A stretch of 64,000 nt of DNA from Octopus bimaculoides (lineage: Eukaryota): positions 96,652,734 to 96,716,733 of the forward strand of contig NC_068982.1 in assembly GCF_001194135.2 (NCBI RefSeq). The letters run 5' to 3'. This document shows positions 32,801 to 62,527 of the stretch, one piece after another (the stretch's first letter is position 1; every line of letters begins with the position of its first letter). A model generated the notes under the pieces. It was not told where the DNA came from and did no database searches. It saw only the letters and a list, made by a program, of their open reading frames with translations. The position numbers and the translations under genes were made by a program.

Positions 32801-35800
32801 TTTTTTTAAACCTAGATAATGAAGACGAAATAATTCTAGCTCCTGGAGAATCGGGTGAAGCAACTATTGAAGAGAAAGATGGACTGAAGAAAATCACAGA
32901 AGTCAATTGGAGTGAAGACTTAGGGAAGCACATTAAGGTATGACACGAATTTTGTTTTATTTATATGAATCTATCATATGTGAAATAGTGCCTTAAGTTA
33001 GCATTTAAAAATATAACCATGTGGACAGCAATCTATTGAGTCATGAATTTATGACTCAATTACCATTGCATCTGTGTTTACTTTTGAAGATTGATTTTAA
33101 CACCTATTTAATCAGTATTGCTGTTTGACATATTTAAGTTTGTTGCTTGATTGACTACAAAATTAACATGGTGCATTCTTAGCATATTAAGTGCAGTGTT
33201 TATTTTTAGCTAAAACATTACATTTATACTAGGTTCTGCCATGGCTTCATGGTTAAGAAGTTTGCTTCTCAACTCTGTGATTTCAGGTTCAGTCCCACTG
33301 TGTGACCCCGTGGGCAAGTGTCTTCTACTATACAACCAGGTTGGCCAAAACCTTGAGTAAATTTGGTAGGCAGAAACTGAAAGCCTATTAATGTGTGTGT
33401 ATGACTGCATCTTCTTGTCTTAGTATTATGTGATAATTTGAAGCAACTGGCACTGTTACACAAGCAGAGTCTTCATTTCCAATCTCCCGTGTAAATTTGT
33501 TCAACCATGGGGAAATATTAACTTAGGAACAGGTGAAAAATGATGGCAGGAAGGACATCTCACCATAGAAAATCTGTTTGCATGAATTCCATCTGACCTA
33601 TGGAATCATAGGAAAGTGGACGTAAGAGTTATCATGATTTGCAAATATCACAGTTGTGATAGGTTCCTTGTGTTCATTTTGGCAATTTAGTTCAACTCCA
33701 CAGAGTTTACAGTTACTGAATTAAATCACGAAGGTATTTTCTATCTTTGAACTAACTGCTTTGGCAAATTTAATTCATTAAATTATTTTACCTCATAGTC
33801 TAGGAAATATTAGAAATTCTATTTTTGAAAGACTGGCTCCCTGTATATTTAACTCGTACTGTTTTTCTCTCGACCATTTTTGTTTCTCTTGGTTTGAATG
33901 TGCAATCATTACTGTGACTAAATTGAAGACAACAAACATGGTTTGGAATGCCAAGCTATTTATAGTCTTGAGTTTAATATAACTACATAAGCGTGGAAGA
34001 CAGATGTTAAATGATGATGATATTGCTTATTCATGTATTTTGTTTTATAGGTTATCAAATCTTACAGAGTTGAAACAAAAAAGCTCACTAAATCTATTGC
34101 CAGGCGAAAGGTTTGCTTTTTATTATTTTCTTTTTCTTTCTCTCAACTTCTTTTACTAGAAATTCAATTACATTTACATCCACTAATTTTATTTTATGAA
34201 ACTGCATTCGCATTCGATATTTCATTAAAAAAAATTCCTTTGTGATGTGTGTTTAAATAAGCATATACACAAGAATGTGATTGTATCAGATTGAGTACTA
34301 TTTCATCCTATTCTATTTTAATGTATAAGTTCCAATTAGTATCAAACTGCAAGAACATTGTATACAGATGAATGTCTTGATGATTTTAAATAAAAATTAT
34401 CAATTCATCACCTAGATTAACTCTTGACCCAGCATTTATCTACAGCAGCAAAGTAAATTGATCTGATGTTCCATGAATAGTTTTTTTATTAAAACCTTGC
34501 TATTCAGTTGATTTTGCTATTAATTTTTGATCTCTCACTTTGAGAATCATTTGATTTATTCTTTCATCTTAGGTTTTTTAAAAAAGTTATGTTCTGCAGA
34601 TTTAATTATATTTGACATATAAATGCAAGGAAAGGGAGTAGAAATATTATCCCCTCTCTTTTCTATTCATATTTTATGCTATCTAGTGTCAACTTCTGAT
34701 ATACAGGTGTCAGCTGAAAAATTCATAAGTTGACCAAGATACTCTAATGGAATTTGACCAAATGAGGTATATTTTTCAACATAGTCCCTGTTGCTGTCCT
34801 CACACTTCTTCCATCAGTGTTGCAGTGCTTGGATCCCATTGGTGGAGAAGCTTTCATGCTGTTGGTCAAAACAGCAGATTTGACATCACTGTAATACTGG
34901 TTCCCAGCCAAGATTTTTTTCATGTTGAGGAATAGATGATAATCAGATGGGGCCAAATCAGGAGAATAGAGAGCGTGATCAACCAATTCAATGCCATAGT
35001 CACATTGAAACCAAAAATTTGTATACTGAAGCATTGTCCTGATGAAACAAGATCAAGACCACTTTCATCAGTTTTCCTGGGCGTTTAGTCTTGATAGCCT
35101 TTTGTGACTGCCTCAGAAAGTTGGCATAATACTCTCCATTGATGGTGACTCTTTTGAAGAATAAACAGTGCCTTTTGCATCCTAAATAACTGAAGCCATC
35201 ATCTTTCTGCAGAGGCAGACCTTTTTTGGAGCAGGTGAAGAGGGGTGTTTCCACTGCATGGATTGCCTTTTTTGTCCCTAGTTCAAAGTGATAAAGCTAA
35301 CACTCCTGGGTTATGAAAATTTCAAGGAAACCAGCTGGATCTTCCTCAGTGTCAGATTTTCCCATGATGTGATCAGCCTGGTGCATCAGATGATGTGGCA
35401 CCCACTGAGCAGAAACCTTCATCATGCCAAGTTCATTGTGTAGAATATTTTCAACTCTCTTGTGGCATATGCTAATAGCCTTGACTATTTGGTTTATAAT
35501 CCATTGTCTGTCACCCATTACCATGTAGTGAACACAAATGTTTTCCTCGGTGGTGACTATTGTAGAACGTCCAGACCATGAGTTATCTTCAAGACTCCCT
35601 TCCTCTACTAAATTCAGCTGTTCACTTGTGCATTGTTGATCAAGCTTGAACGTAATGTAGCAACCATGGGAGCAAAATCATTCTTCAGCAGGTACTTGAT
35701 AACACCAAGATGCCAAATTTTCCTGAGAAGTTGCTACTAGTTACTGTTATAGTTTTCTTTGAAGAGTCAGGTGTTAGTTGCCTGGAAACAATCATCATCA

Positions 35801-38800
35801 TCGTCGTTTAACGTTCGCTTTCCATGCTAGCATGGGTTGGACGATTTGACTGAGGACTGGCGAACCAGATGGCTGCACCAGGTTCCAATCTGATCTGGCA
35901 AAGTTTCTACAGCTGGATGCCCTTCCTAACGCCAACCACTCCGAGAGTGTAGTGGGTGCTTTTACGTGCTACCGGCATGAGGGCCAGGCTGACGGTTCTG
36001 GCAACGGCCACGCTCAAAAAGGTGTTTTTACGTGACACCTGCACAGGAGTCAGTCCAGCGGCACTGGCAGCGACTTCACTCGAATGTTTTGTTTACATGC
36101 CACTGGTACAAGTGCCAGTAAGGCGACGCTGGTAACGATCACACTCAAATGGTGCTTTTTATGTGCCACCAGCATGGCAGCCAGACCGCTGCTCTGGTAG
36201 TAATCCCACTCGGATGGTGCTTTTAGCGCTCCACTGACACGGGTGCCAGTCATCGAATTTGGTTCAGTTACGATTTCACTTGCCCCAACAGGTTTTTGCA
36301 AATAGAGTTTAGTGTCCAATGAAGGAGAGGTTGGCATGGGTGCCAGTTGTTGAATTTGGTATGATTTCACTTGCCTCAACAGGTCTTCGCAAGCAGGGTT
36401 TTGTGTCCAAAGAAGGAAAGGTACACATAAGTGGGCTGGCTACACCCCTGGTAAAGGTCACGGGTTATGGTCTCACTTGGCTTGTTGGGTCTTCTCATGC
36501 ACAGCATATTTCCAAAGGTCTTGGGCACTAGTCATTGCCTTGGTGAGGCCTAATGTTTGAAGGTTGTGCTTCACCACCTCATCCCAGGTCTTCCTGGGTC
36601 TACCTCTTCCACAGGTACTCTTAACTGCTAGGCTGTGACACTTTTTCACACAGCTATCCTCATCCATTCTTGCCAAATGACCATACCAGCGCAATCGTCT
36701 CTCTTGCACACCACAACTGATGCTTCTTACGTCCAACTTTTCTCTCAAGGTACTTACACTTTGTCGAGTATGCACACTGACATTACACATCCATCAGAGC
36801 ATACTGGCTTCATTCCTTGCGAGTTTACGCATGTCCTCAGCAGTCGTGGCCCATGTTTCACTGCGATGTAGCATGGCTGTTTGTCCACATGCGTCATACA
36901 GTCTGCCTTTTACTCTGAGCGAGAGGCCCTTTGTCACCAGCAGAGGTAAAAGCTCTCTGAACTTTGCCCAGGCTATTCTTATTCTAGCAGCTACACTTTC
37001 AGTACACCCTCCCCCACCACTGACTTGGCCACCTAGGTAATGGAAGCGATCAACTACTTCTAGTTTTTCTCCCTGGAATGTGACAGAATTTGTTCTCTGC
37101 ATATTTTCAGTGTTTATAGCACCTGAGCATTTGCCACATACAAAAACTATCTTGCTAGTTAGCCTTCCTTTGATATTGCTGCACCTCTTATGTGTCCATA
37201 GCTTATACTGGGTACATCTTATGGAGTTTCTACCTACGCCTTTTCTACAGATCGAGCAGGGCCATCTACTTGAAGGGGTTTGTGTTTTGTTTACCTTCCT
37301 ACTTATTAGGACTTTGGTTTTAGTGAGGTTGACTCTAAGGCCCTTCGATTCTAATCCTTGCTTCCACACCTGAAACTTCTCTAGTTCTGATAATGACTCA
37401 GCAAATAGAGCAAGGACATCAGCATAGAGGAGCTCCCAGGGGCATCCTGTCTTGAATTCCTCTGTTATTGCCTGGAAGACTATGATAAATAGGAGGGGGA
37501 TGAGGACTGAACCTTGGTGGACCCCTACGTCTACCCGAAATTCTTCACTACTCATTGCAAACCCTCACCTTATTGACGGCGTCCCTGTGCATGACTCGCA
37601 CAGCTCTCACGAACCATTCATCTATCACTAGTTTCCTCATTGACCACAAGACAAGGGATCGGGGGACCCTGTCAAAGGCTTTCTCTATGTCAACGAAAGC
37701 CAGGTACAGAGGTTTATCTTTGGCTAGGTATTTCTCCTGCAGCTGTCTTACCAGAAATATAGCATCAGTGGTGCTTTTTCCTGGCACGAACCCAAACTGT
37801 GTCTCATCTAAGCTGACTCTCTCCCTAATTAGTTAGGCTGTGACGTTCATTTCCTAATCCAACAACTTGATACCTCTCATTACCTGATCCAACTTGAAAC
37901 AATGCAGTTATTAAGGAGATTGAAATTAATGCATGCAAGATTTCATGGTTCTAGCATCACTCCTTCATAGTCACCCTATGAACTTTTCAGTCTTGCCTTA
38001 TATCTCTTTCAGACTCAGATTATGCCATGTTTGTTGATAGTCAACAAAGGCAAAACAGTTGTCTGGTATTAATACAAGTGTAAGATTTTCTCCCATATTA
38101 CTCGATTTTTGAAGCTGAGTACGTCCTAGTTTGTTCTCTCTAGAATATTTTTACTAGCTGTTTAACCTAAAAAAAGAGTGATATGTATTCTGGATACATT
38201 ACAAAAATGTTTTGAACATCTTTACCTATAGGTCTACCTAGTCAGAAGACAGTTTGTTTGCAGGAGATTTGACTGTTAGTTTTAGAGCTCGATACAAGAT
38301 TCACTAGAAGACAGATTTTGTTGCACAAAATCTTCCACCAAACTTTAGTCACAATTTATGTTCCTAACACTAGCTTAATGATAACTAAGTTATTTTATTA
38401 AATTCTTTGTTATTTTAAAATTAATTGAAAAGAAACACAGAGCATCTCAACAGAAATATGGTAACAAAAGGGTGTAGTTGATAAATAGATGATAAACTTG
38501 TCTTAATATGAAGACTTGCTATGCTAAGGTTCAACAATGCAGCTAATGAATTTTATGTAAAATTCTTATTTTCACTGTCTTGTTTTTTAGCTATACTATG
38601 ACCATATTTGTTCTTTTTTCAGCAATGGAAGAAGTTTGGATCTGCTGAAAGTGATCCACCAGGTCCTAACCCTGCAAACACGATTATTTCTGAAGACATA
38701 TTCATGTCATTTTTGAACAGTAAAGAGGTATGTAACCCTTTGTCTACTTACGGAATATACTAATTGTATTGCATTTTATTAGTTCTTCAATATTCTTGTC

Positions 38801-41800
38801 AGAAAAATACATTGCATCCTGCTTCAAATTACCTTAAGACTTTAGATTTTAAACTAGCCCCATCCAGTTCAAATGTTCTGCGTGTTTTATGTTCAAGCTG
38901 GCAAGACGCATCCTCTCACACTCTACCATGTCATTCTAAACGTAAACAATGACCTCTTCAAAATCTTGATAAGATAATGCATGATCAGTTCAGAAGGGTG
39001 TGTATAAAATGAGCTTTGCATTTGGCAGTAATCTGGATGGTAAAGCATTAATATGAAAATTCCTTTGAAAACAATGTGTTAATTTTTTTGTACAAACATA
39101 ACGGAATTGTACATGACTCAGCTTTTTGACAAATAGTACTTTCTAAATATTTTCAGCACCAAATTGAAACAGACGATGACCCACTTCTGAAAATAAAATC
39201 TCAGAAAATTGTTACTTGCCGTATTTGTAAAGGAGATCATTGGACTACCAGATGTCCTTATAAGGACACTCTACAACCATTACAAGATAATCTCAAGGAA
39301 GGAGAGAAGAAACAAGATGCAACAACTCCTGGTAGTGCTGCTGGTTCATTGGCATCAAAAACTGGCAAATATGTACCACCAAGTTTGCGTGATGGTGCCA
39401 ACAAAGGACGAGGAGAATCAATGAACAATAGCAAACGAGGTAAATATATTGTTTTAGTGTTTTCCTGGTGAACCTCAAATATTTTAAAGAATGTTTGTTT
39501 ACTTGAGCATATCTTGTATATAACATTTCAATTGTGCACATAGCTGCCTCTGTTTTATGCATAACATCATCGTTATTTAACATTTGTTTTCCATGCTGGC
39601 ATAAGTTAGATGATTTGACAGGAGCTGGCAAGCTAGAGGACTATGCCAGGCTCTAGTGTCTGCTTTGGCGTAGTTTCTATGGCTAGATACCCTTCATGAT
39701 GCCAACCATTTTGCAGAATGTACTGAGTGCTTTTTACGTGGTACTGGTGAGGCCATCAAGACATAGAGCCCCTCAGCTGAGAGGGTGCGTATATTGGAGG
39801 AGATAGTTTTATGCCTGGTGACGAAAGTTTGTAGAGAAGGTACATGGAGAAAGAAGAGAGATGATAAACAGTGTTGGGTTGCAGAAGCCAGAGTTGGGGG
39901 CAAGTGTAGTACATGGTAAGATGTAGTTTGGTTCATTGGGTGGGGGTTAGTGTAATGTGTGGGTGGAGAGCACATAATGCACAGTGCTTCCAGAACTTTT
40001 GCTGAGGTGGTCAGGTCCTTGCAAGAACCTCATATCACCAGACATCTCAGCCCATCATCATTGCTTGTGAGGCTCAACATCATCATTGAATGTCCACTTT
40101 TTTATGCTTGCGTGGGTTAGATGTGATTTGTTGAGGCAGATTTTTCTACAACCAGATGCCCTTGTTGCCAATTCTCACTTGTTTCCCAACAAAGTAATAT
40201 TTCCCATCACCTGACATGTTTTTCACAGAAGACTGGAGACAACATCTCTAGTATGATGATGTTCATTTCCAACGATTACACGATGTTGAGACATGGATAC
40301 ACACAAACACATACATGGCAGTTTTCTTTCAATTTCTGTCTACCATATCCATTCACAAGGCTTTGATTGGATAGAAGCTATAGTAGACACTTGCCCAAGG
40401 TGCCATACAGTAGGACTGAACCCAAGACCACATGGTTAGGAAGCAAGCTTCTTAACCACACATTGCTGTGTTCTTAATTTTATATATATATTTCCATCAC
40501 CATCATTGTTTTAATGTCTACTTTTCTATGATTGTATGAGTCAGATGGAGTTTATTGAAGCAAATTTTTTATAGGTGGATGCCCTTCTCGCCACCAACTC
40601 TCACTTGTTTCCTAGCAAAGTAATATTCTCCCATTGGTTAACGTGTTTATGCAGAATATTGAAACCGAATGACACTGCTTATGTAACTGACATTCATTTA
40701 CAGCAACCAAATGATGTCAAGGCAAGGAGGTACATCCACACTCACATGCACATATGATAGGGGTCCTTTCATTTTTTGTCTACCATATCCACTCAAGGCT
40801 TTGGTTGGCTTAGGGTTATATTAGAAGACATTTTCCAAAGATGATGTTCAATGAGACTAAACCTGAGACCATGTGGTTGAGCATCAAACTTCTCAACCTT
40901 AATGTCATATCTTCATTTTGTGTCTTGTATTTCCATGCTGGCATGGATTAGATGAATATTAATTGATGAGGTTGTACTTTACAGCCATATGCCCTTCCTT
41001 TCATCAATCTTTACTTGCTTTTCAAGGAAGGGATTTTTATTCTGTTGGGCTTGAAAAGTATAGAGCTACATGTTACATTGATTCTAGGGAATATAAACAT
41101 TTATACATTCACAAACATATATGTGGCATATAAATAGCACCCACTACACTCTTAGAGTGGTTGGCATTAGGAAGGACATCCAACCGTAGAAACCATACCA
41201 AACCAGATTGGAACCTAGTGTAGCTCCCCAGTTTTTTCAGTCAAACCCATGCCAGCATAGAAAGCGGGCGTTAAAGGATGATGACTGTTTGCTTAGTTAA
41301 AACTTGTCATCAAAATTAAATGCTTCAGTATTTATGATCATATAATTATACTGATTCACACATGCACACATAAAGGTATAATTTTGGATCATGTAGTTGT
41401 AATTTCACAGGCCAAAATGCTTCTTCGACAGAAGATATATCTTTAGGTGAAGCACTTAATTTTCCTAGCCTAAAACTTCAGATCTACAGTAGAAATCGAT
41501 ATGTCTATAATTTTAAAATATTAGGATGTCAATTGGTCAGCAAGAAATGTTTATATCAGTAGTTTATGTAAATATATTGTATTGTCTCACTATTGATTTC
41601 TTTATTCAGATGACTTTGCTACAATCCGTGTGACGAATCTCTCTGAGGATACTCGTGAAGCTGATTTACAAGAGCTATTCCGGCCCTTTGGAACTATTCA
41701 CAGAATATATTTGGCTAAAGATAAAAACACATGCCAATCGAAAGTGAGATTTTCTTTGTTTTTCTTCTCATTTTAATTCTGCTAACTTTTATGTGTATGT

Positions 41801-43373
41801 CTGTTAAAATTGAAAATCAAGCGAAAACCTTAAAACATGTTAGAAGCTAATAGAATTGATTGATTTATATGATTTTTTTTATTATAATAGTTAACTGTGC
41901 TACTACTAAAACTATTCATGGAAGGCATAAATATACAGCTATGTAACACAGTAAACCCATTTTGAGTAGCTGTATTGTGACATACTTATTTCAATGTGCA
42001 TTTTCACAGATATTGAACTTGGTAGCTTTAACACTTTCCATACACATTTTATATCAGAAACTAAGTAATGNNNNNNNNNNNNNNNNNNNNNNNNNNNNNN
42101 NNNNNNNNNNNNNNNNNNNNNNNNNNNNNNNNNNNNNNNNNNNNNNNNNNNNNNNNNNNNNNNNNNNNNNNNNNNNNNNNNGAGATGCACCATTTTGAGC
42201 GTGGCCGTTGCCAGTACCGCCTGACTGGCTCCCGTAGGATTTTCGAGTGAGATCGTTGCCAGTGCCCCTGGACTGGCTTGTGCGGGTGGCACATAAAAGA
42301 CACCATTTCGAGCGTGGCCGTTTTCGTGCGGGTGACACGTAAAAGCACCCACTACACTCTCTGAGTGGTTGGCGTTAGGAAGGGCATCCAGCTGTAGAAA
42401 CTCTGCCAAATTAGATTGGAGCCTGGTGTTGCCATCCGGTTTCACCAGTCCTCAGTCAAATCGTCCAACCCATGCTAGCATGGAAAGCGGACGTTAAACG
42501 ATGATGATGATCTTACATTCTGAATTAAAATAGTGCTGGATGGATTTGACTTTAACTTTTATTCCTGATGGTTTGATTAAAACAAGTGTTGGGGATGAAT
42601 TGAGATTCATTCAGCAATTCTACATCTGTCGCAGAAATGTTAACATACTAAATAAAATGCCATATTCATCTGATTTAGCTTTTCATACACTTTGGTTTGA
42701 TAAAATAAACATCAGTTTGTTACAAATTTATTGCTTTGTAACAATGTTTAAAATGAAAAGAATAAAAAAAAAGACAAGAAAACTATAAGTTACTGTATGA
42801 TGAAAAAGGCAAAGAAAATTACCACTTGTAAAGCAACATGAATTATTTGGACTTGAGATATAGAATAAGTATATTCAAGAAAAGCTTTTCAAAACATTTT
42901 TTGAAAGGTATACTCAGGATTATAAAGAGTTACATTAAGCTTATATTTTCTTCTATTTCTTATTGCTTTTTTGGTCCCTGGAATAGAGAACTTTATATAT
43001 ATAAAATATGTTGTGTTGTTGTTAGTGTCAACATTGGAGTGAGATAAATGTGGAAACATTACATGTGCACTTATCTCATAGTTGTCTCGTGGTTTTCTAA
43101 TAATTTCTCTTTTCTCTGATCAGGGTTTTGCTTTCATCAATTTTCATCGCCGTGAAGATGCAGCTCGGGCTATTCTTGGAGTATCTGGCTATGGTTATGA
43201 CCACTTGATTCTTAATGTTGAATGGGCAAAGTAAGTTTAACCATAACTTTTTCTAGTTACTTTCTCTCTGGAGATTTCTTCTCTTTCGTTCATACTCTGT
43301 TTATGTTGTACAAAAACATTTGTCCTTTTAAATTTGATGTTATCTTCTTTGCAGGCCATCTGTAACATCTTGA
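29870..43373 (+). CDS. EIF3G: Eukaryotic translation initiation factor 3 subunit G, spliced CDS of 9 exons, 876 nt, 291 aa
   Basis: join(29870-29877,29987-30024,32816-32937,34051-34110,38623-38727,39157-39439,41610-41743,43124-43230,43355-43373). All introns are GT-AG with consistent phases. Protein has SWAEQVE, WKKFG..E.DPPGPN, the zinc knuckle [30 protein letters not shown] and an RRM ([14 protein letters not shown]...KGFAFINF...[15 protein letters not shown]). Confidence 0.97.
29987..30024 (+). CDS. EIF3G: EIF3G coding exon 2 ([13 protein letters not shown])
   Basis: ttttaaccag acceptor and GTACGT donor. Contains the conserved SWAxQVE motif. Confidence 0.92.
32816..32937 (+). CDS. EIF3G: EIF3G coding exon 3 (DNEDEIIL...LGKHIK)
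   Basis: Phase 1 in, phase 0 out. cctag acceptor and GTATGA donor. KKITEV..GK.IK matches the KTVTEY..GKKFK region. Confidence 0.88.
34051..34110 (+). CDS. EIF3G: EIF3G coding exon 4 ([20 protein letters not shown])
   Basis: ttttatag acceptor and GTTTGC donor. Matches IVRTFRIETRKASKAVARRK. Confidence 0.93.
34702..38000 (-). mobile_element. Mariner (D,D34D-type) element in EIF3G intron 4, split by an RTE insertion
   Basis: TIRs with TA at 34700-1 and 38001-2. Transposase fragments ([29 protein letters not shown]) at 34744-35700. The 5' UTR piece resumes at 37896-38000. Confidence 0.88.
35793..37895 (-). mobile_element. 5'-truncated RTE LINE, 2.1 kb, with 8-bp TSD GAAACAAT
   Basis: RT motifs [37 protein letters not shown] and LLYADV. 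(GAT)n tail. TSD at 35785-92 and 37896-903. Frameshifted. Confidence 0.92.
38300..38472. mobile_element. Fragment of a recalled octopus MITE-like repeat (piggyBac-like end)
   Basis: Ends GAAATATGGTAACAAAAGGG (reverse complement of CCCTTTTGTTACCATATTTC). Based on a recalled consensus only. Confidence 0.35.
38623..38727 (+). CDS. EIF3G: EIF3G coding exon 5 (QWKKFG...FLNSKE)
   Basis: ttttttcag acceptor and GTATGT donor. 105 nt, phase 0/0. Confidence 0.95.
39157..39439 (+). CDS. EIF3G: EIF3G coding exon 6 (zinc knuckle to ...GESMNNSKR)
   Basis: ttttcag acceptor and GTAAAT donor. Contains [17 protein letters not shown]. Confidence 0.96.
41610..41743 (+). CDS. EIF3G: EIF3G coding exon 7 (N-terminal half of the RRM)
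   Basis: ttattcag acceptor and GTGAGA donor. Reads [28 protein letters not shown]. Confidence 0.96.
42182..42510 (+). mobile_element. Young RTE-derived 3' end in EIF3G intron 7
   Basis: Ends ...CCAACCCATGCTAGCATGGAAAGCGGACGTTAAACGATGATGATGAT. The 5' side runs into gap 42071-42181. Confidence 0.85.
43124..43230 (+). CDS. EIF3G: EIF3G coding exon 8 (GFAFINF...VEWA)
   Basis: ctgatcag acceptor and GTAAGT donor. Contains RNP1. Confidence 0.96.
43355..43373 (+). CDS. EIF3G: EIF3G coding exon 9 (KPSVTS*)
   Basis: tctttgcag acceptor. TGA at 43371-3. Confidence 0.9.
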
Positions 43374-47282: not shown

Positions 47283-48496
47283 TGACAGTAGCTGTAAAGT
47301 TCATAGGCTGACTATGAAGGAGTAATGCTAGAGCTGTGAAATCTTGCATGCATTAATTTCAACTCTCATTAATAACTACATTGTTTCTTACCAGGTAAAC
47401 TGATTTCTGACTGTTCAAAGAAGACTTCAGAAGTAATTAGTAGCGACTTATCAAGAAATGTGACAAAATTTGGCATTGTGGTGTTATCAACTGCCTACAG
47501 AAAAAGAGTTTAGCCCACAAGAATATTCATGCTGACATGGTTACTATATCAGAGGATGATGCTCCAGCTTTATCAACTGTGGAAGAGTGGGCAGCTGAAT
47601 TTAGGCAGGGATGAGAAAGTCCTGAAGATGATCCAAGGTCTGGACATCTTACAACTGCCATCACTGCAGAAAGCATTGTGTTTACCACATGGTGATTGAC
47701 TATAAACCAAATAGTCAATGATATTAGCATATCCCTTGAGAGAGTTGAGAATATCCTGCACAATGAACTTGGCATGACGAAAGTTTGTGCTTGGTGGGTG
47801 CCACATCCGACACCTGATCCAAATTAGGCTGATCGCATCACAGGGAAATTGGACACTGTTTGAGGCAGATCCAGTTGGTTTCCTTGAACATTTCCTAATT
47901 CAGGTTGAGTGTTGGCTTCATCACTTTGAGTGAGAGACAATCCATGCAGTAGAAACACCCCTTCTTACCTGCTCCAAGGAAGGCCATCTGTAGGGAAGGT
48001 GATGGCCTCAGTTTTTTGGGGATCAAAGGGCATAGTGTTTACTGACTATATTCAAAAGGGCCACACCATCAATGGAGAGTTTTATGCCAACTTGCTGAGG
48101 CAGTTACAAAAGACTCTCAAGGTCAAACATCCAGAAAAACTGGTGAAAGAGGTCTTGTTTTGTTGAAACAATCCTCTGGTACACAAGTCCTTAGTGCATG
48201 ACTGAGGCAAATAATTCTCCCTGTTCTCCAGATTTGGCCCTATTTGTTTATCTGTCCCCCAATATGAAAAAGCACTTGGCTGGGAAGCAGTATCACAGTG
48301 ATGACATCATGTCTGCTGTTGATGACTTTTTTGATGAACAGGATGAAAGCTTCTTCACCAAAGGGATCCAAACACTGCAACACCAATAAAGAAGTGTATG
48401 GACTGCAAGGAGGACTATGCTAAAAAATAAACCTCATTTGGTCACATTCCATGAGAATATCTTAACTGCCTATGAACTTTTTTTTGCCCACCCTCA
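47283..48496 (+). mobile_element. Near full-length decayed mariner
   Basis: TIRs with TA at both ends. Transposase fragments GKVMASVFWG, TINGEFYANLL and SPDLA, with multiple stops and indels. Confidence 0.88.
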
Positions 48497-49590
48497 TATC
48501 ATTTTACAAACATAATGGGATCTATTTTAAAATGGGGGCCACAGTATTTTCTTAACGAAACACTTTGAAACTTGGTACACTGGTAGAATGTCATATAAAA
48601 CATCTTTTTCTCTTAGTAATGTACCTAGACGTACATTAAATGGTGCCACATCTGCTTTTTTTTTTTGTTAACTTTGGCTGCTGGTTCTCTTATTAGTTTT
48701 TGTTGGATTTTGTTTAAATCAAGAGTATTTGATTATGCATAGCCATGTAATAATTTCTCTTATTTTACCCTTTAAAAACCACAAAGAATTCCACATTTTC
48801 TGTAAAACAATTTCTCCTCTCATGTTTAAGAAACCTTAACATCATTGCTTGGTCAATACAATCAGTGTGTCAAGTCACATGTGAATTAGATAAAGAGTAG
48901 AAAATAGAGATATTCAACTCTTAAGCAGTGCATGCATATACACATATGTTAATACTTGCTTTTATGTCAAGTTATATATAAAAACAATTTAAAATTAAAC
49001 TGAAGGATTTACTTAATACATTATAGTGGCACACATATTTATTAACTTTTACAGGGAAAATGTTGACAGCGATTTGAAGTTTCAGCTTGCTTGCCTTCAT
49101 CAGAGTGTGATTTACTTTGGTTCTTTTTGGCTGGTTGGAATTTTGGTGACTGGAGTAATGTGAATGATTAGGTTTTGGTAGATAGGGGAAGTAGTAAATG
49201 TAGAAAGGCAGGAAAGTGAAAAGGATAGGAAGAAAGTATGTATTTGTAGGGTGTGGGTTGATAAAAAGGTATGGTGAAAAGATTTATATATATATATATG
49301 CACAAATACATACACACACAGAGAGAATAAGTGGTATCACTTAATTTAAAGACAAGAATTTACTGATGATGAAACGTGATTTCCATTTATTAAACAACTT
49401 ACCATGTATGAAGAGAAACAATATTTTACTCCTTTAAATGATAGTTTAAGCCCCAAAATACAAATTATTGACAGCATTAATGATGCCACACAAATGAGTA
49501 TCACTTAATGTAAGAACATTTAAAACAATTTTTTAAATGAAAATGGAATGTGTGCTTTAAAGACTGAGAAGTATAAAAACATATATAACA

Positions 49591-50607
49591 CTAATACTTG
49601 GTCAAATATCCAAAATTTCTCAAAACAGAATCACATCTACGAGGCATTGAATCAATAAGATTAATTATCACATTATCTGGAATTTCTTGCCATTTTTTTA
49701 CTATATAATCATACAATTCAGTCGATGTCCAGGATTGCTTTTGTTGAATGCTCATATTGACCCGTTTCCATAAAGTTTCAATTGGATTTAAATCTGGTGA
49801 TTGTGCTGGCAACTGTAGCACCTGCATTTTCTTGCTTTTTGTGAATTCCTTGATTGTTCTTTCAGCATTCTTAGGTATGTTGTCATATTGAAAAATCCAC
49901 GACCGTTCTAAATGACTTTTGGCATATGGAAGCATAGCTTTATCTAAGATCTCCACATAGGCCGTACTGTTCATGATGCCCTTGACTTGATGAATGGGGC
50001 CGACTCCTTTTCCTGACATGCAACCCCAAACCACGACACTGTCATCTGCGTGTTTAACTGTCAGATTCATACACTCTGATTCATCCCCTGTACAACGTTG
50101 GACGTACACTTGGCCGTCAGAGCTGAACAAATTAAATTTCGACTCACTTGACCATAAGATTTTTGACCAGTCTGAGGATGTCCAGTTCTTATGTTCCTGG
50201 GCGAATTGAACGCGGGCACATCGGTTTTTCAGAGAAATATAAGTTTTTTTCTGCGCAACACGCCCCACAAGTCCAAACTGTTTTAGTCTGTTTTTTATGG
50301 TTGTGATACAGATCTGCTTCTGATATTTCTGTCGAACGTTTTTCAAAATATCAACAGCAGTCATTTTCTTGTCCGTTGTCGATAAACGGTGAATGTACCG
50401 GTCCATCCGTTCTGTGGTTTTTCGAGGTTGCCCTGACCGAGGACGATCAGAATAGCCACCAGTTTCATTGAAGATGTCCACAGCATGATGAGCAGCAGTT
50501 ACAGAGCACCCAACATCAGCAGCTATGGCTCTAAAAGTCCACTTCAGCCTATGCAGTTGGACAATTCTCGATCGCGTTTCTGATGATAAGCTTTTGCGTT
50601 TACCCAT
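49591..50607 (-). CDS. Intact 338-aa Tc1-family (DD34E-type) transposase-like ORF, first catalytic Asp replaced; candidate domesticated gene
   Basis: Paired-like HTH plus RSGQPRKTT, WSSESKF (canonical WSDESKF), FQYDN, and SPDLNPIE with exactly 34 residues between D and E. No stops or frameshifts. True ATG is at 50607 (the track starts at an upstream TTG). Confidence 0.85.
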   Translation of the reverse strand: MGKRKSLSSETRSRIVQLHRLKWTFRAIAADVGCSVTAAHHAVDIFNETGGYSDRPRSGQPRKTTERMDRYIHRLSTTDKKMTAVDILKNVRQKYQKQICITTIKNRLKQFGLVGRVAQKKTYISLKNRCARVQFAQEHKNWTSSDWSKILWSSESKFNLFSSDGQVYVQRCTGDESECMNLTVKHADDSVVVWGCMSGKGVGPIHQVKGIMNSTAYVEILDKAMLPYAKSHLERSWIFQYDNIPKNAERTIKEFTKSKKMQVLQLPAQSPDLNPIETLWKRVNMSIQQKQSWTSTELYDYIVKKWQEIPDNVIINLIDSMPRRCDSVLRNFGYLTKY

Positions 50608-51730
50608 CAAAACGGATCATTGGATGATATAATGAATTTGTTGTTAACCGTCTGCTTTCCTAAAATAGAAGTAAAAGATCATAAAATATTAAATACATGA
50701 GGATGTATATGATATGTATTTATGCATTTTGTCTTCTGTAATAACATACTCGTAATAAACATAAACAATGCCCACGTGCTTCTCTCCCTTACATAAAAAA
50801 GTAAACGAACCAATCAACTTATTCTAAAAACTTCAATTATAAGAGTGGTTCACATTTGCGGTGTTTTATCATCCATGAGAGTACTGCTAATTCAAATTTT
50901 CGGGCTTAGACTTACATTATTTGAAAGAATATAATTTTACTTTCTATAAATAGAAATTGTTTGAATAGTAAGTGGTTAAATATGCAGGAATGTGCTGTGT
51001 AAGCGAGGCCTTTAGTGTTCATTTATTTTCGTAAATGGCCATATGAAAGACTCTTATTAACGTTTCATTAACAGTTTATTTTGTGCTTTTAAACCAAGTG
51101 ATATAATTATATAGAACGCATGCACGCTCACACTCACAAACACATCGAGTGCACAAATATACATAAGTACATGTGCGTATATATGTAATGATGTGTGTAT
51201 ACCCTGGGTATAACATTAACCTGTATCCAGGGGTGAGATTCCAGTTCGAGAATTCTGGAGTTGTGAGGACCGTGGCTTGAGCCCTTAGTTACCGTTATTC
51301 CTAGAGTAATAACCGCCAGAACCTCATCTATAAGTTAAGTAGATTTTCCGAGGGTAGACGAAGCTCCTGTTGCTTTTGACAAAGTCGTCGAGGAGGCAGC
51401 TCTTCGAGGTGAATCGAACCTGCCCTCTTGCAATGCTTGCTCTTGGAACCTTCTGTGACGACCGAGAGATTGGCAAAAGTGTTGTTCAGGCTTTTTGCAC
51501 TTAAATCCAGTGACAGACAGATGTCTCACTATCATATCATTTCTTCATCCGTTTAGTATTTTATAAAGTTCTGTGGCGATGGATGTGTGGTGAAAAATCA
51601 TATTTACGCACATGTAAGGATGAAAGTAAATCAGTACAAATCAGGCTAAAGGAGAGACAAGATGAGGCAATCATGTATGTATGTGTGGGTGCGTGTGTGT
51701 ATGGCGTTTGTGCGTGCATGCATGTATGTA

Positions 51731-52172
51731 CAGGGGTTGGACAAAATAATGGAAACACCTAGCATCATAATTTTGAAATATCTATAAAACCGTCAAAAGC
51801 TTGTTTATTTTTATGTTTTTTTTATTTATTATTAGTGTTGCTTAATATGTTTTGCTAAAATTGCTGTTTCTTTTCAGATATCATCAGAAAAAGGTAATTA
51901 AAATTTATTAAAATGACCGATCTATTGGACTTTCAAAGAGATCAAATTGTAGGAGCTCGTATGGCAGGCGCTAGCGCAAAGAAAACAGTCTAAATGTTTG
52001 GTGTATCAAGAAGTACAGTCTTGAAAGTAAGGACAGCCTTTGAGAAAGAGGGTAAAACTTCCTTGTCGAAACAAAACTCCGGAAGAAAACCAAAACTTTC
52101 AGATAAGGATCGTAGGACTCTTACGCGAATTGTTTGAAAGGATCACAAAAGTACAGCTCCCAAAATTACTGC
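51731..52172 (+). mobile_element. 3'-truncated Tc1 element (left TIR plus N-terminal transposase)
   Basis: TA-CAGGGGTTGGACAAAATAATGGAAAC TIR. ATG at 51913 gives MTDLLDFQRDQIVGARMAG...SGRKPKLS with two stops. Confidence 0.8.
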
Positions 52173-55119
52173 ATGTATGTAGCATTCTTTGTGTGGGACA
52201 GGAGAGATAGTGAAACCATTGATGCACAGATTTTGGGTCTGGGGGACTGATTTTTCCATGTTTGACGATCAAATATTAACATTTCTTTTCGCGAAGTTCT
52301 ATTCCTATGTCAGCTGAAAATGTTGTTATTAATTTTGGCCGTTTTGTTAACCTTTGAACTGCAGAGGTTGCCAAATGTGGCTTCGAGAAGGCGAATGATT
52401 ACATATTTAGTTAGGCTGCCTGTCATTCCCCATATTAAAACCAAGTCCCAATTTGAAATTTTCAACGAATCCATATATTTACATAAATACATACAGTGAT
52501 TGATTACTGAGAGTATTAAGCTGAATGCCAGGAGTGTGTCTATGTACATGTATTTGTCTAGAGGTGTGAATGTATGCTGGCTAGAAGTGAATCATGGTAT
52601 TTTTGTGTTAATGAGAAGCAGGAAAGTTCTGCGTTCGTTGTGGATGAAATGATCTTTTTAACCTGAGGTTGAGTATCAACCAAGAATTCTCTGCATTTAT
52701 CTGTCTCCCCTTAAACCTCTGCCTTCTGAAGAATCTCTGTGCTTATTGTCCTGCACTTCTAAATTTTTAAGACCATATTTTGGCGGAAAACTACATGGAA
52801 GTTTCCATTCAAATCATGCGATCACACGATGCAGCTGAAATATGACTGGTCAGAATTCAGAGCAAATCATCTGATATGCGGTGATCTATTCTTTGTTAGT
52901 TAGACATCAGGGTTTTGAATTCTAAGCTTTACTACATTATTAATAACTTGGTGTTAGAACTCAATATACATATGCTTCAGAATAAAGCATTAGGTAAGTA
53001 CAGAGTGTAATATGAAATTAAATGAATGACAAGGGAACAGGAATTATGTAATCAGCTTCATTAGTTTACTCCCTTTTTCTTCTACAAGATGCAATGCATG
53101 CACAGCTGAGTACTTGTACATCGCCTTCGGCTCTGAGTGCGCTGCATTTTATAACAGAAACAGCTCTAAGCTAATGAAGTTGATTATGTAATTCCTGTTT
53201 CCTTGTCATATATTAAATTTTACATGCACATGCATACACATACACATGCGTGTGCACACATATGCATGTACAACAAACACTCATACATATCTCATTTATC
53301 TCGTCCATCAATTATACCAGATGGTACAGGAACCTCAGGCATTGAATCCCCTACCACCATCCTCATTTTTCTATGTTTCTTGTCAGTCATGAGATCTGTG
53401 TATAAGAGAGTGCATCAGACCTGTTTGTACCAAATACACCCTACCTTTGCCCTTTCTGTAGTACTAGTTGTCACTCTCCCTGTTCCCATCATACAAGTCA
53501 TTGTTTCTACCATACTCTTGTTCTTCATTCACTCATTTTGGCTCTTAATTTACCATTTCTCTCTCTCCTATGATGACATTACCTTATGAGAACATATTCT
53601 GTGCTCTTATAGTGTATAAGGCAAACCTTCTTGTGTTGGTACCATCATAAAATGTCCCCAGTCATCCCTGTAACATTTACAAAAAGTGTAGGATTCTTAG
53701 AATACCTTTTAATTTTGTTTTGCCAAGAACATGAAACATTCTCTAGTACCGATGCTATGGGAAATGCATCCAGTGCATAGTAAAGTGGGTGATGAGAAGA
53801 AGAACATAAAGCCATGAAAACTAAGTAAACAAATGAAGAGTATGACCCTCTGATTTGCTTATGAGAGCTATGGCTTCTTATAAGAAATGGCTTAGACAGT
53901 GATGACGCATACAACCAGCCCAAGCCGAAATGAAAAGTAGATATAAAATGATGATGATGATGATGATGATGACGACATACATGTACACACACACACACTT
54001 GTGTGTGTTAACAGTTAATTTGATGTGTAATTATTATAGATATGTCTTATTCCTACTTTCACTCATTATTCTGTAACAAAACAAAAATAAAAGAACTAAA
54101 AGAACATTGAACAAAAATTATAAAATATATAAAAAAATTTTTTTTTAACCCTAGTATATGGCTGAGGAATTGTGGAGAGAAGGCTTAGGGTGGAGGTGAA
54201 GTGAATGAGTGCAGCAAGAGAAGGGGGCGAAAGAGTGACTGGAGGATACCATAGAAGCAGGTGGAGGAGAAGAGTGTTATTGCAGGGAAAGCATCCAGGT
54301 AGCAAAGCTATGGGGAAAGGACAGTGAGAAAATGTAGAGGGTCACAGTGAATATATGCAGTGAGAGCAGTAAGAGAAAAAAAAAATTGGAGAACATCCTA
54401 GAGACGAGAATAAGTAGAAAATGAATTGAGTGTGAGTAGCTTGATAAGAAAAGAATTGGAGGAAGAAGAGCACCATAGAGGTGGAGTGAAAGCTGAGGAC
54501 AAAAACAATTAAAGCATACCTTTCAGGCCATGATCCACTTCCTCACACACACCTTCCTTCTTAGTCAATGCAGAAGCTAGGGATAGATGAGTGGTTGATG
54601 AGAGCAGTACAAACTATGTACAAGGATGCTATCAGTAAAGTGAAGGTTGGCAATTACTCTAGCAATGAATTTAGTGTACAAGTAGGAGTTCACCAAGGAT
54701 CAGCTCTCAGCCCCCTCTTGTCTATCATAGTCCTCCAACCCATAAAAGAGGAACTGAAGACTAGTTGCCCTTGGAGCTCCTCTATGCTGATGACCTTGTT
54801 CTTATAGCTGAATCTCTACCCGAACTAGAGAGAAAATTTCAGGTGTGGAAGCAAGGTTTGGAATCTATGGGTATTAGAGTTAATTTAGCCAAGGCCAAAG
54901 TCCTATTATGTCAGAAAATGGACAAATCTCAAACCCCTTCAGGGAGATGACTCTGTTTGATATGCAGGAAAGATTTTGGTAGAAATGCCATACAGTATAC
55001 CCAGTGCAAGTTATGGACACATGAGGTGCAGTGGTATCAAGGGAAGGTAAACAAAAAAAGTAGTCTTTGTGTGTGGCAGATGTTACAATAAACACTAAGA
55101 ATGCACCGAGAACAGACTT

Positions 55120-56030
55120 CCTCAAATGTCTAGTGTGTAAATGTAATGTTTTTAGTTGTGGTCGAGGGTTACCAATTGTAATGGCTAGTTCTTCGTTGAA
55201 GTTGAGGGTCACCAATTTGTAACGGTTGTTAAGTGTTGGTTGGTTGCCAATATGTAAGATGGAGGAAGAAAGTGATTGAAGTTGTAAAGAGATATTTATT
55301 TACTGTTACTTTNNNNNNNNNNTCTTCGTTGAAGTTGAGGGTCACCAATTTGTAACGGTTGTTAAGTGTTGGTTGGTTGCCAATATGTAAGATGGAGGAA
55401 GAAAGTGATTGAAGTTGTAAAGAGATATTTATTTACTGTTACTTTGTATATATCCAAAACCACAACGGGTTGGTATATATAATTAGTAAATGGAAAAGCA
55501 TGTGAGGTAAAAAGAGTTCATTTCAGCTGGTATGTGTGTACACAATCTCATAGTAGTATATATAGAGAGATATGCTAATGTTACAGAGGAAAGAAAGTGA
55601 GTTTGTGAAAGTTATAGAGTTGAGGGAGGTTGTGTCTCATAGTTGGCTGGTTGTAACCTTCTTTCTCCTTCTGGCCATTTGTCTTCAGTGGCTGCCTTCT
55701 TGTGACTATGACTCTAGTTGTCCGTTCACTAACTAATTTTGCCTTGCCAAATTCTAGCATTTATAACTAGCCAAAACTATTTAGAAAGATGAACATATTG
55801 TTGAGAACAATAGATTTCGTTGGCGGTCTGTTATCTCTATTTGAGCTTTTGGTGGACTAGAAGAGGTTAGAAGGGTCAAGTGGCAAAGACATTATTCTGC
55901 TTAGCAAAGGTATCTGGCAAATGTAACTGCTGTCACTCATAGAAAAACTATTGTTTTACCGTGAGAAAAGTGCTGTTGAACTATTAATTGAAATTTGGCT
56001 ATTGAGGATCGAATCCACACTATGCCTGCA
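55120..56030 (-). mobile_element. Insertion in the RTE, possibly a Penelope-like fragment
   Basis: Interrupts collinear RTE sequence. Family call rests on recalled similarity only. Contains a 123-bp artefactual duplication around a 10-N gap. Confidence 0.3.
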
Positions 56031-56406
56031 TGAAGCCACAAGTGGGATCCTTAGAAGTAGTAGATAGCTTCCATTACCTAAGTAATCAAGTTAGCAGTGG
56101 TGGAGGAAGTTCTGAAAGAGTAGTTGATAGAATAAGTACAGGCTGCACAAACTTCAGAGAATTACTACCTTTGTTGGCAACAAAGGGCCTCTCCCTAAGA
56201 GTGAAAGGTAGATTATATGATGCCTGTGTATGTACAGCCTAGCTACATGACAATGAAATATGGGCTATGACTACAGAGGAGATGTGATGGCTTGAAAGAA
56301 ATTAAGCTAGTATGTTCCACTGGATGGGCAATGTCAGTGTGCATGTATGGCAGAGTGTAAATAATTTAAGAGAAAAATTGGGTATAAGAGGCATCAGTTG
56401 TAGTGT

Positions 56407-61268: not shown

Positions 61269-62527
61269 TGAGGCTGGGCTGAAAAGTTAATAGGCTGATT
61301 ATGAAGGAGTGATGCTAGAGCTGTGATATGTTGCATGCATTAATTTTAACTCTTATGAAAAACTGCATTATTTCTCTCCAGATAAACTGACATTTGACTC
61401 TTCAAAGAAAACTTCTTAAGTAACTAGTAGCAACTTCTCTTGAAAATGGACAAAATTTGGCATCGTGGTGTTATCAAGTACCTGCAGAAATAGGGTTTTG
61501 CCCACAAAGGCATTCATGTTAACATGGTTGCTACATTAGTGGATAATGCACCAGATTTATCAACAGTGCAAAAGTGAGCAACTGAATTTAGGAAGTGAAG
61601 GGAGAGTCTTGGAGATGACACAAAGTCTGGACTCCTGCAACTACCACTTCTGAGGAAAACATTGTGTTCATCACACGGTAATGGCTGACAGGTGATTGAC
61701 TATAAATCAAATAGCCAATGCTATTAGCATGTCCTGTGGGAGAGTTGAGAGTTGATGAACTTGGCATGATGAAGGTTTGTGCTTGGTAGGTGCCATGTCT
61801 TCTGACACCTGATCAAAAGCACACCAGGGTTATCACATCATGGGAAAATCTGACATTATTTCATGTATATTTAGTTGGTTTCTTTAAACTTTTCCCAACT
61901 CAGAATGAGTGTTGGCTTCATCACTTTGAGCCAGAGACAAAGAGACAATCCATACCTACTTCAAAGAAGGCCAAGGTTGTTTCATCTGCAGGGAAGGTGA
62001 TGACCTCAGTTTTTGGGATGCAAAAAAAATAGTGTTTATTGACCATCTTCAAAAGGGCCACACCATCAATTGAGAGTACTGTACTAACTTGTTGAAGCAG
62101 TTATGAAGGATTATCAGGAACAGACGCTTAGGAAAACTGACAAAAAGGGCCTTGTTTCATCAGGACAGTGCACCAGCACACAAGTCCTTAGTTTGGCTGC
62201 AGTGTGTGACTGTAGCTTTGAACTGGTTGATCACCCTTCCTAATCTTCTGATTAGGCCCCATCTGACTATTAACTATTCCCCAATATAAAAAAAACAAAC
62301 ACTTGATTGTGAACCAGTATTGCAGTGATGATGACATCATGTCTGTTCTGGATAACTTTTTATAACAAACGGGATGAAAGCTTCTTCACCAGTGGAATCC
62401 AAGCATTGCAACACTGATGGAAGAAGTGTGTAGTCTGCAAGGGGGATTATGTTGAAAAATAAGCCTCATTTGGTTACAATCCATGGGAGTATCTTGGTCA
62501 GCCTGTGAACTTTTCAGCCAACTCTCA
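61269..62527 (+). mobile_element. Near full-length decayed mariner (same family as 47283 and 34702)
   Basis: 30-bp TIR pair. ATG at 61446 gives MDKIWHRGVIKYLQK*. Contains GKVMTSVF, FHQDSAPAHKS and APSDY, with stops and indels. Confidence 0.9.

Follow-up and report, generated by a model that had tools for sequence, protein, structure and literature searches.

A complete Tc1-family IR-DR transposon with an open transposase frame and an altered catalytic triad in Octopus bimaculoides

Introduction

Sleeping Beauty (PDB 5cr4) is the reconstructed vertebrate representative of the Tc1-like DD34E elements with inverted and direct repeats (IR-DR), i.e. of the Tc1/Tcb1 clade. Elements of this clade are about 1.6–1.8 kb long and end in TA. 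They carry long imperfect inverted repeats (IRs) with outer and inner repeated sites and encode a protein of about 340 aa, which combines a paired-like helix-turn-helix (HTH) with a DDE_3 domain and has a D-E spacing of 34 residues. Cephalopod genomes are rich in transposable elements (TEs), and few co-options have been documented in them. Domesticated genes such as SETMAR/Metnase, CENP-B, TIGD and POGK/POGZ retain the DNA-binding fold and have an altered triad. They are single-copy, have orthologues across species, are under purifying selection and in many cases are fused to host exons.

As a class, domesticated transposases are without paired terminal inverted repeats (TIRs) and target site duplications (10.1101/656579). 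TLEWI, a low-copy-number mollusc gene of Tc1-like type and a domestication candidate (Puzakov et al.), was described from pteriomorph bivalves. It has DD36E spacing, introns in the coding sequence and no TIRs, and it was reported to be absent from cephalopod genomes and transcriptomes (10.1101/656579). The usual fate of Tc1/mariner elements is vertical inactivation, and inactive mariner/Tc1 copies encode dominant-negative transposases (Lohe & Hartl 1996, reviewed in PMC2874221).

The locus described here lies in a 64-kb stretch of the Octopus bimaculoides genome, referred to as the window. An initial annotation had proposed it as a candidate domesticated, single-copy, spliced cephalopod gene derived from a Tc1 transposase.

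Results

The open reading frame (ORF) of the transposase is bracketed by two inverted-repeat arms. Together they delimit a whole Tc1-like IR-DR transposon of 1769 bp, including the TA at each end (49335..51103, minus strand). The left (5') TIR is at 51060..51103 on the minus strand and the right (3') TIR at 49335..49377 on the plus strand; both were identified by repeat pairing, alignment and motif search. The motif search placed an outer direct repeat (DR) in each arm, TATCACTTGGTTTAAAA at 51087-51103 (minus strand) and TATCACTTAATTTAAAG at 49335-49351 (plus strand). The right inner DR (TATCACTTAATGTAAGAACA; 49499..49518, plus strand) is located 164 bp inside the outer one, which is the IR-DR type of arrangement. 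The two occurrences of the TTAAGTGATA motif, at 49335 and 49499, were already noted in the initial annotation as being about 165 bp apart, and the distance of 164 bp bears this out. A candidate degenerate left inner DR (AACCACTTACTATTCAAACA; 50958..50977, minus strand) matches at 13 of 20 positions, a weak match that may be due to chance.

Both arms begin with TA followed by TCACTT. Over their first 48 nt they are 76% identical with a 1-nt indel, and the arm alignments comprise 16 nt at 88% and 33 nt at 73%. The earlier statement that a matching left TIR is missing was wrong, as the matching inverted repeat is found at 51060-51103. Not seeing a TIR by eye is unreliable for IR-DR elements, the arms of which are only about 75% identical. 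The element of the closest relative has the same IR-DR layout, and its arms are only 75% complementary. Arm divergence was considered as a clock and dropped, because the arms of the relative's presumably young element are just as divergent.

With up to three mismatches allowed, the 17-nt terminal motif had three matches in the 64 kb (128 kb of strand), compared to 0.65 expected by chance. All three were at the positions and in the orientations predicted for an IR-DR element. For a given 2-kb stretch and one orientation, the chance expectation was about 0.01. On either side, the element is bordered by low-complexity sequence rich in TG/TA, which would fit insertion into a single such tract. TA precedes TCACTT at both ends; it is too short and too common in AT-rich sequence to prove a duplication without an empty site. 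The non-coding arms have one indel and have lost one of the four DRs, and the ORF has no indel. The locus is a structurally complete IR-DR transposon. The presence of both TIRs, with TA at both ends, counts against domestication.

The ORF (49591..50607, minus strand) is uninterrupted and encodes 338 aa plus a TAG stop from the ATG at 50607, or 339 aa when read from the TTG at 50610. No other N-free ORF of the window is as long; the second longest is a 253-aa RT fragment. Pfam assigned HTH_Tnp_Tc3_2 (E 9e-17) and DDE_3 (E 1e-12), and also HTH_SB and HTH_23. The intact 338-codon Tc1 frame described initially was thereby confirmed. Among the other TE-like ORFs of the window, Pfam recognised an RT/PHD fragment and a weak HTH and no more. 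An Rfam scan found no RNA families in the 64-kb window.

Two domains were distinguished. The bipartite paired-like HTH DNA-binding domain (aa 1-113; 50269..50607, minus strand) was delimited by Pfam, the AF2 model and Foldseek. In the model it has six helices with a pLDDT of about 80-94, and Foldseek matched it to the paired domains of Pax5 and Pax6. The DDE_3/RNase-H-like catalytic domain (aa 114-338; 49594..50268, minus strand) was identified by Pfam, Foldseek and similarity to 5cr4 (phmmer, E 1e-44). For the protein model, the best Foldseek match was again 5cr4 (TM 0.81, E 5e-17), followed by Mos1 and Metnase, and the predicted structure superimposes on the transposase domain of Metnase/SETMAR with a TM of about 0.8. 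The spacing from the second D to the E (D242 to E277) is 34, i.e. DD34E. On sequence grounds, the 338-aa protein is a Tc1 family (DD34E) member of the IS630-Tc1-mariner superfamily by descent, but presumably not a functional one. Its paired-like DNA-binding fold is predicted to be kept.

Residue conservation was counted against 106 relatives. The first catalytic Asp, found in 106/106 relatives and corresponding to D153 of Sleeping Beauty, is replaced by S154 (codon AGT; 50146..50148, minus strand), a change that requires two nucleotide substitutions. In DDE/RNase-H-like transposases this Asp coordinates the catalytic metal. Given this established chemistry and the Ser in its place, we infer that the transposase cannot cut or join DNA. 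The loss of the first Asp behind the earlier description as catalytically dead thus stands; the rest of the triad is intact, with D242 of the DNDPKH motif (49882-49884) and E277 (49777-49779, both minus strand) kept.

Further changes affect motifs around the active site, all on the minus strand. A187, D188 and D189 (GCA GAT GAC; 50041..50049) replace the GGG of KHGGG, where G is found in 100, 105 and 106 of the 106 relatives. In the alignment of relatives, I244-P-K-N247 (49867..49878) takes the place of D-P-K-H in DNDPKH, with D in 105/106 and H in 106/106 at the two altered positions. L266 (49810..49812) replaces the W of WP(S/A)QSPDLNPIE (W in 103/106). The changes to DNIPKN, HADD and LP had been noted before and hold against the 106 relatives. 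The GRPR motif reads GQPR, with Q60 (50428-50430) where 94/106 relatives have R. This Arg is important for DNA binding in the Tc1 family. Of the claim that the HTH and a GRPR-like linker remain, the HTH part is supported by Pfam and the model; the linker part is not, as its conserved Arg is now Gln.

Besides D154S, the protein deviates at seven more columns that are at least 95% conserved, compared to a median of 0 among the relatives. Altogether about 8-10 residues are aberrant at family-invariant positions, and two of them are two-step codon changes. By hand count, 6/8 aberrant residues are inside the active-site motifs, which hold about 24/53 conserved columns. Of 107 sequences, only one has a more divergent catalytic domain, and the DNA-binding domain is within the normal range of the family. 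Domain-wise decay was dropped as a discriminator, as uniform decay of the more conserved catalytic domain predicts the same pattern. The divergence of the catalytic domain also fits a constraint relaxed on catalysis alone.

The initial annotation had further described host-gene-like splicing. All of the motifs it named were found. The acceptor-like polypyrimidine-AG string (50660..50677, minus strand; motif scan) is in the 5' untranslated part of the transposon. Sequence reading gave a 6-codon upstream ORF (uORF; MIRFDG and a stop) at 50600..50620, which overlaps the ATG, and an in-frame TGA at 50617-50619 between the acceptor-like string and the ATG of the main ORF (both minus strand). AATAAA (49386..49391, minus strand; motif scan) is inside the right IR, and GTAACT is at 51292. 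As evidence for splicing or polyadenylation, the motifs are not above chance. The window has 71 acceptor-like sites of the same strength, or 0.55 per kb per strand; the probability of at least one in the 496-nt leader is about 0.24. AATAAA occurs 69 times per strand (1.08 per kb per strand). At a GC content of 35%, polypyrimidine-AG and AATAAA motifs are next to uninformative. Moreover, the acceptor-like string, the uORF and AATAAA are all inside the transposon. Because of the in-frame TGA, an upstream exon could add only 5'UTR, with no coding sequence and no N-terminal fusion.

No protein with an identity above 47% was found among about 15 billion database proteins (5.8 G clusters, 1.84 G representatives), the annotated proteomes of O. 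vulgaris and O. bimaculoides included. TE-derived ORFs are annotated in both species, yet no annotated orthologue or paralogue exceeded this identity, and a host gene is therefore without support from that side. Public assemblies list no called gene for exactly this 338-aa protein, and no second copy of the element was found within the 64-kb window. No DNA encoding relatives was found in metagenome, prokaryote-genome and viral contigs; these hold no cephalopod DNA and are uninformative on copy number. A 20.9-kb locus of O. vulgaris, reached via a LINE RT (P0121) as the nearest annotated protein of octopus, was rejected as the syntenic site. It has only dispersed repeats in common with the window and no collinear flanks, and it is a paralogous LINE copy. 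The Tc1-like IR-DR lineage is rather isolated and previously uncatalogued, comes from an octopod and is at most 47% identical to any predicted protein.

We checked how long the frame would be expected to stay open. Neutral decay was simulated with an indel rate taken from this genome. For the intact 1014-nt frame, the probability of remaining open was about 1e-4 or less at a divergence of at least 4%, about 1e-2 at 2% and about 1e-2 to 0.1 at 1-2%. If the aberrant invariant residues came from neutral drift, they would imply a divergence of about 4-8%. The intact frame would then have the lowest of these probabilities, which counts against a frame left open by youth or chance. If the copy is young (1-2%), its open frame is unremarkable.

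The CpG observed/expected ratio of the ORF was 0.79 and that of the non-coding parts of the element 0.73, compared to 0.34 for the rest of the window and 0.20-0.32 for old LINE copies; the element was less CpG-depleted than 91% of the window. These ratios point to an insertion of fairly recent date. The argument is a weak one because 25/279 stretches of the same size, and likewise the upstream flank, were as CpG-rich as the element.

Discussion

Probably, the locus is one complete classical Tc1-family (DD34E) cut-and-paste IR-DR insertion that was vertically inactivated, with the frame still open through youth and/or chance. From the left end to the right, it consists of TA, the left IR with its outer DR, a leader of about 500 nt, the 338-aa ORF, the right IR, which contains a poly(A) signal and both the inner and the outer DR, and TA. 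It is like the Tc1/Tcb1-clade elements in its domains, spacing, ends, size and repeats. Unlike them, it has Ser as the first triad residue, mutated KHGGG, DNDPKH, WP and GRPR motifs, a degenerate left inner DR and an identity of at most 47%. The replacement of the first Asp, together with the changes in the four motifs, would have inactivated the copy. The open frame may mean that the copy is fairly young, or it may be due to chance. If it is made, the protein would do no more than bind DRs or poison active subunits, the latter by analogy with the dominant-negative action of inactive mariner and Tc1 transposases. As in such copies, a full-length defective transposase is combined with ends that look usable, judging from the sequence. 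By the same analogy, the defective transposase would be expected to inhibit an active one or to compete with it, and the element would move only with a related active transposase in trans.

The step to a domesticated, single-copy, spliced cephalopod gene was not supported, as three of the four arguments for it fail or lose strength. Both TIRs, TA and the inner DR persist, the splice and poly(A) motifs are at background frequency and the GRPR Arg is lost. Like SETMAR/Metnase, CENP-B, TIGD and POGK/POGZ, the octopus protein has an altered triad and a DNA-binding fold that is predicted to be retained. Unlike these genes, the element keeps both TIRs and TA flanks, a fusion is impossible and no annotated orthologue was found. 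The locus resembles TLEWI as a mollusc Tc1-like gene considered for domestication. Membership of TLEWI was rejected, as the octopus element has DD34E spacing, an intron-free ORF and both TIRs.

Two other readings can be largely set aside. That the inverted repeats match by chance and the ORF is a TIR-less remnant is very improbable: the aligned arms are short and imperfect, and short two-copy matches are often due to chance, but the terminal motif matched only three times in 128 kb of strand, always in the predicted place and orientation. Its low expectation per 2-kb stretch, the TA start of both arms, the same low-complexity kind of flank on both sides and the same architecture in the nearest relative also speak against chance. 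It is even harder to believe that the transposase is still active with a non-canonical site (S-D-E or a compensating acidic residue), which would make the element an autonomous, unusual Tc1 lineage. The intact ORF, the kept D242 and E277, E155 next to S154, the recognisable TIRs, the low CpG depletion and the isolation of the lineage would fit such activity. Against it stand the metal-coordinating Asp present in every relative, the radical changes near the active site (GG to DD, D to I, H to N, W to L) and the loss of one of the four DRs.

A more serious alternative, which we nevertheless consider rather unlikely, is that selection kept the frame open and the dead transposase serves as a lineage-specific domesticated DNA-binding gene or transposition repressor. 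As a repressor, it would act as a dominant-negative subunit or compete for DRs, and selection would have favoured it for as long as there was an active relative. In spite of D154S and 7-9 further changes at invariant sites, the frame has stayed intact, which neutral decay of at least 4% would hardly allow. The catalytic domain has diverged to an unusual degree, conservation of the paired-like domain is normal and its fold is modelled with confidence, the non-coding IRs have decayed (1-nt indel, left inner DR lost) and the octopus proteomes contain no close intact paralogue. For mariner, it is established that inactive transposases act as dominant-negative inhibitors (PMC2874221). However, both TIRs and the TA flanks persist, the GRPR Arg is lost, neither annotated Octopus proteome contains an orthologue in spite of its TE-derived ORFs, the exact protein is not a recorded gene and the splice evidence is at chance level. 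The ORF and the non-coding parts of the element are equally CpG-rich, which points to youth and not to coding constraint. Selection bias has to be considered as well: the locus was flagged as the longest ORF, and thousands of Tc1 copies would include a few frames open by chance. It is unlikely, too, that we see an early stage of domestication, in which selection keeps a recently inactivated Octopus Tc1 transposase open as a repressor that binds DRs or as a host DNA-binding gene in the making, with the TIRs still there, the core dismantled (SDE, HADD, DNIPKN) and the paired-like domain preserved.

With the inactivated insertion as the preferred reading, the locus is, as things stand, a matter of routine TE annotation: a catalytically dead copy of an isolated octopod Tc1-like IR-DR lineage, probably without a host function. 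If the frame is under selection, the locus would show a Tc1 transposase in early domestication or evolving into a repressor, with the TIRs in place, a stage that is rarely caught. In cephalopods, it would then be the first one described.

Results

The longest N-free ORF of the 64-kb window lies on the minus strand at 49591..50607 and runs for 338 aa counted from the ATG, with a TTG one codon upstream. It is uninterrupted, as the initial annotation had stated (338 codons without stop or frameshift); the runner-up is a 253-aa reverse-transcriptase (RT) fragment. Pfam matches were HTH_Tnp_Tc3_2 (E 9e-17), DDE_3 (E 1e-12) and weaker N-terminal HTH models, and aa 114-338 aligned over their full length with 5cr4, the catalytic domain of Sleeping Beauty (E 1e-44). 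In the AlphaFold2 model (mean pLDDT 79), six helices at the N-terminus precede an RNase-H-like core. The model superimposed on 5cr4 (TM 0.81), Mos1 and Metnase/SETMAR, and its N-terminus on Pax paired domains. The product is therefore a Tc1-family transposase of normal architecture.

The TIR/TA search of the flanks proposed in the initial annotation, which had seen no matching left terminal inverted repeat (TIR), recognised both TIRs: the left arm is present at 51060-51103 and pairs with 49335-49377. Pairing occurs in two segments offset by one base, 49335-49350 with 51088-51103 (88%) and 49345-49377 with 51060-51092 (73%), and a direct alignment of both ends showed identity from TATCACTT inwards. 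Allowing ≤3 mismatches, the 17-nt terminal motif TATCACTTAATTTAAAG was found three times in the whole window on both strands (0.65 expected): at the right outer end (49335), 164 bp further inside (49499) and, inverted, at the left outer end (51103). The left inner copy is degenerate at best (13/20 at 50977). TA directly precedes both ends, and the flanks on both sides are low-complexity and TG/TA-rich, as expected for one tract split by insertion.

The closest relative with fetchable DNA is encoded on a 1638-bp Logan contig (L001, SRR31023096; protein P0003, 45% identity). This contig is a whole Tc1 element with inverted-repeat arms and short direct repeats (IR-DR): its gapless 221-nt arms show just 75% complementarity and carry short conserved repeats at the outer and inner edges. 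The layouts match and the ends are paired, so the octopus locus is a complete 1769-bp IR-DR Tc1-like transposon (49335-51103). L001 itself has an intact 362-aa ORF and a CpG o/e of 1.2 and is probably active or very young.

Conserved residues were compared with 13 relatives and then with 106 full-length relatives. The reported loss of the first catalytic Asp holds: S154 stands where 106/106 relatives have D, and its codon (AGT) is two steps away from GAY. The other motif changes were also read correctly, but the triad has lost a single member, as D242 (second Asp) and E277 (Glu) are kept. KHADD replaces KHGGG (G in 100/106, 105/106 and 106/106), DNIPKN replaces DNDPKH (D in 105/106, H in 106/106) and LP replaces WP (W in 103/106). 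The supposedly retained GRPR-like linker of the DNA-binding part is altered to GQPR, with Gln in place of an Arg found in 94/106 relatives. Leave-one-out counting at columns with ≥95% conservation gave 8/53 deviations for this protein, the highest of the set (median of the relatives 0, next highest 7). Overall, a strongly diverged catalytic domain adjoins a relatively normal DNA-binding domain.

The spacing of 34 residues between D242 and E277 makes the element, by descent, a DD34E member of the Tc1 family, with ends of the IR-DR type, but it lacks the complete triad of functional members. Membership in TLEWI was rejected: the element is DD34E-spaced, with an unbroken ORF and both TIRs, whereas TLEWI is DD36E, intron-bearing, without TIRs, restricted to bivalves and reported absent from cephalopods (10.1101/656579). 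The TIR/TSD loss listed there for domesticated transposases was not found, and the element does not fit the usual domestication criteria cited in that work.

Among 5.8 billion protein clusters, the best matches (42-47% identity) were Tc1/Tcb1-type transposases, found in bees and nematodes and on anonymous contigs of 1.2-2 kb. When 1.84 billion representatives were scanned exhaustively with HMMER, the family numbered 26,190 members, and the closest of them reached no more than 44% identity. The exact protein has no record as a called gene. The database includes annotated octopus proteomes with TE-derived ORFs, in which no orthologue or close paralogue of the transposase occurred. As a control, the RT fragment of the window had its top matches in proteins of Octopus vulgaris (79%) and O. 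bimaculoides (76%), which identifies the DNA as octopod. Following the first of these matches into the O. vulgaris genome led to a paralogous LINE copy, which was rejected as the syntenic site. Contig collections (metagenome, prokaryote-genome and viral; no cephalopod DNA) yielded nothing for the transposase relatives.

The initial annotation also described host-gene-like splicing, a uORF and an AATAAA after the stop. The acceptor-like string, uORF and AATAAA exist, all of them within the transposon, and the splice evidence is at chance level. Equally strong acceptor-like sites (≥12/14 pyrimidines, then YAG) number 71 in the window (0.55 per kb per strand), giving a chance of ~0.24 that the 496-nt leader contains one. 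The AATAAA hexamer has a density of 1.08 per kb per strand, and the non-consensus donor GTAACT was counted 17 times on the minus strand. An in-frame TGA (50619-50617) separates the proposed acceptor from the ATG; hence, any upstream exon could add only untranslated sequence, and there is no host-domain fusion.

Mutating the ORF in silico left it free of stops with a probability of 0.35, 0.14, 0.05 and 0.02 at 2, 4, 6 and 8% divergence. Decayed repeats (within the window and between window and O. vulgaris) had 0.14-0.20 gap openings per mismatch, 90% of them frameshifting. Combined with this gap rate, the chance that the frame escapes both stops and frameshifts falls to ~9e-3 at 2% and ~9e-5 at 4%. 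Taking the 8/53 aberrant residues at invariant positions as the product of neutral decay gives ~4-8% divergence, at which an open frame is improbable. This clock is soft because P0060, an apparently intact relative, deviates at 7 of the 53 columns, so some of the differences may reflect the history of the lineage instead of decay.

CpG o/e was 0.79 in the ORF and 0.73 in the non-coding parts, against 0.34 in the rest of the window and 0.20-0.32 in old LINE copies. The copy may therefore be younger than most of the sequence around it, but the hint is weak: 25/279 windows of the same size reach the same CpG level, as does the upstream flank. CpG o/e is very uneven across the window (1.8-kb windows: mean 0.35, sd 0.24, maximum 0.95). 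Nearly undepleted patches, with peaks near 7.0-9.2, 24.8-26.6, 29.8-31.8, 51.1-52.1 and 57.8-59.8 kb, stand out from a strongly depleted background and may represent young insertions or islands unmethylated in the germline.

Several other repeats occur in the window. A second, broken Tc1-like fragment (51934-52179, plus strand) lies ~830 bp upstream of the element on the opposite strand. It comprises the N-terminal HTH part only (~aa 12-91 of relatives; 32% identity to the relative P0015; weak Pfam HTH_29/HTH_32) and is of another family; the intact ORF gives no match to it. One LINE family (RVT_1 and PHD finger) has several decayed copies, mutually 73-80% identical, at 36362-37844 (minus), 54564-55121 (plus), 56052-56406, 1411-2013 and 9801-10191. 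The first contains the 253-aa RT ORF and shares 87-89% identity with a copy from O. vulgaris (chromosome OX597814.1).

A ~180-bp unit with at least five copies (18411-18597, 42326-42511, 35793-35977, 41122-41193, 1275-1352) shares 85-91% identity with its counterparts in the O. vulgaris locus and yields a recurring pseudo-ORF with a D/N-variable site. Because it often adjoins LINE copies or N gaps, a SINE or the 3' tail of the LINE is its probable identity. Another repeat has three copies, 75-79% identical (48064-48481, 34736-35147, 62293-62514), one of them ~850 bp downstream of the element. Its ORF 34744-35034 had no Pfam match at E <0.01; a 13-letter motif in it resembles the C-terminal motif of mariner (DD34D) transposases. 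A minus-strand ORF fragment with two C2H2-like zinc-finger motifs (19100-19344; CSVCARPW...HLRSH and CRACGREC...HAKVH) abuts an N gap and is probably part of a TE ORF. N runs (~2.8-3.3, 6.4-6.8, 16.2, 18.6-19.1, 42.1-42.2 and 56.8-57.0 kb), several edged by (TG)n or (TA)n microsatellites, are assembly gaps, the window being part of a draft scaffold; they do not touch the element.

Discussion

The best-supported reading, which we consider probable, is a vertically inactivated yet structurally complete copy of a Tc1-like transposon. Its main rival, that selection has kept the frame open as a repressor or incipient host gene, is unlikely but deserves consideration. The open frame is statistically odd, the non-coding arms have decayed and the DNA-binding domain is relatively normal beside the diverged catalytic one. 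However, TIRs and TA are retained, the GRPR Arg is lost, no annotated orthologue was found anywhere in the searched proteins and splice motifs are no better than chance. Moreover, the octopus genome carries very many Tc1/mariner copies, and this locus was flagged for its open frame, which is a selection bias. Of the versions of this rival, a gene domesticated long ago and shared across cephalopods is the least likely, since an element of that age should no longer have TIRs or non-coding CpGs. We give hardly any credence to an element still active with an S-D-E site, or to TIRs that match by chance.

Vertical inactivation is the ordinary fate of the Tc1/mariner family (PMC2874221). For the inactivated copy, the encoded protein is predicted to be unable to catalyse transposition. 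If made, it might bind the direct repeats or act as a dominant-negative subunit, and the element would be mobile only with transposase supplied in trans.
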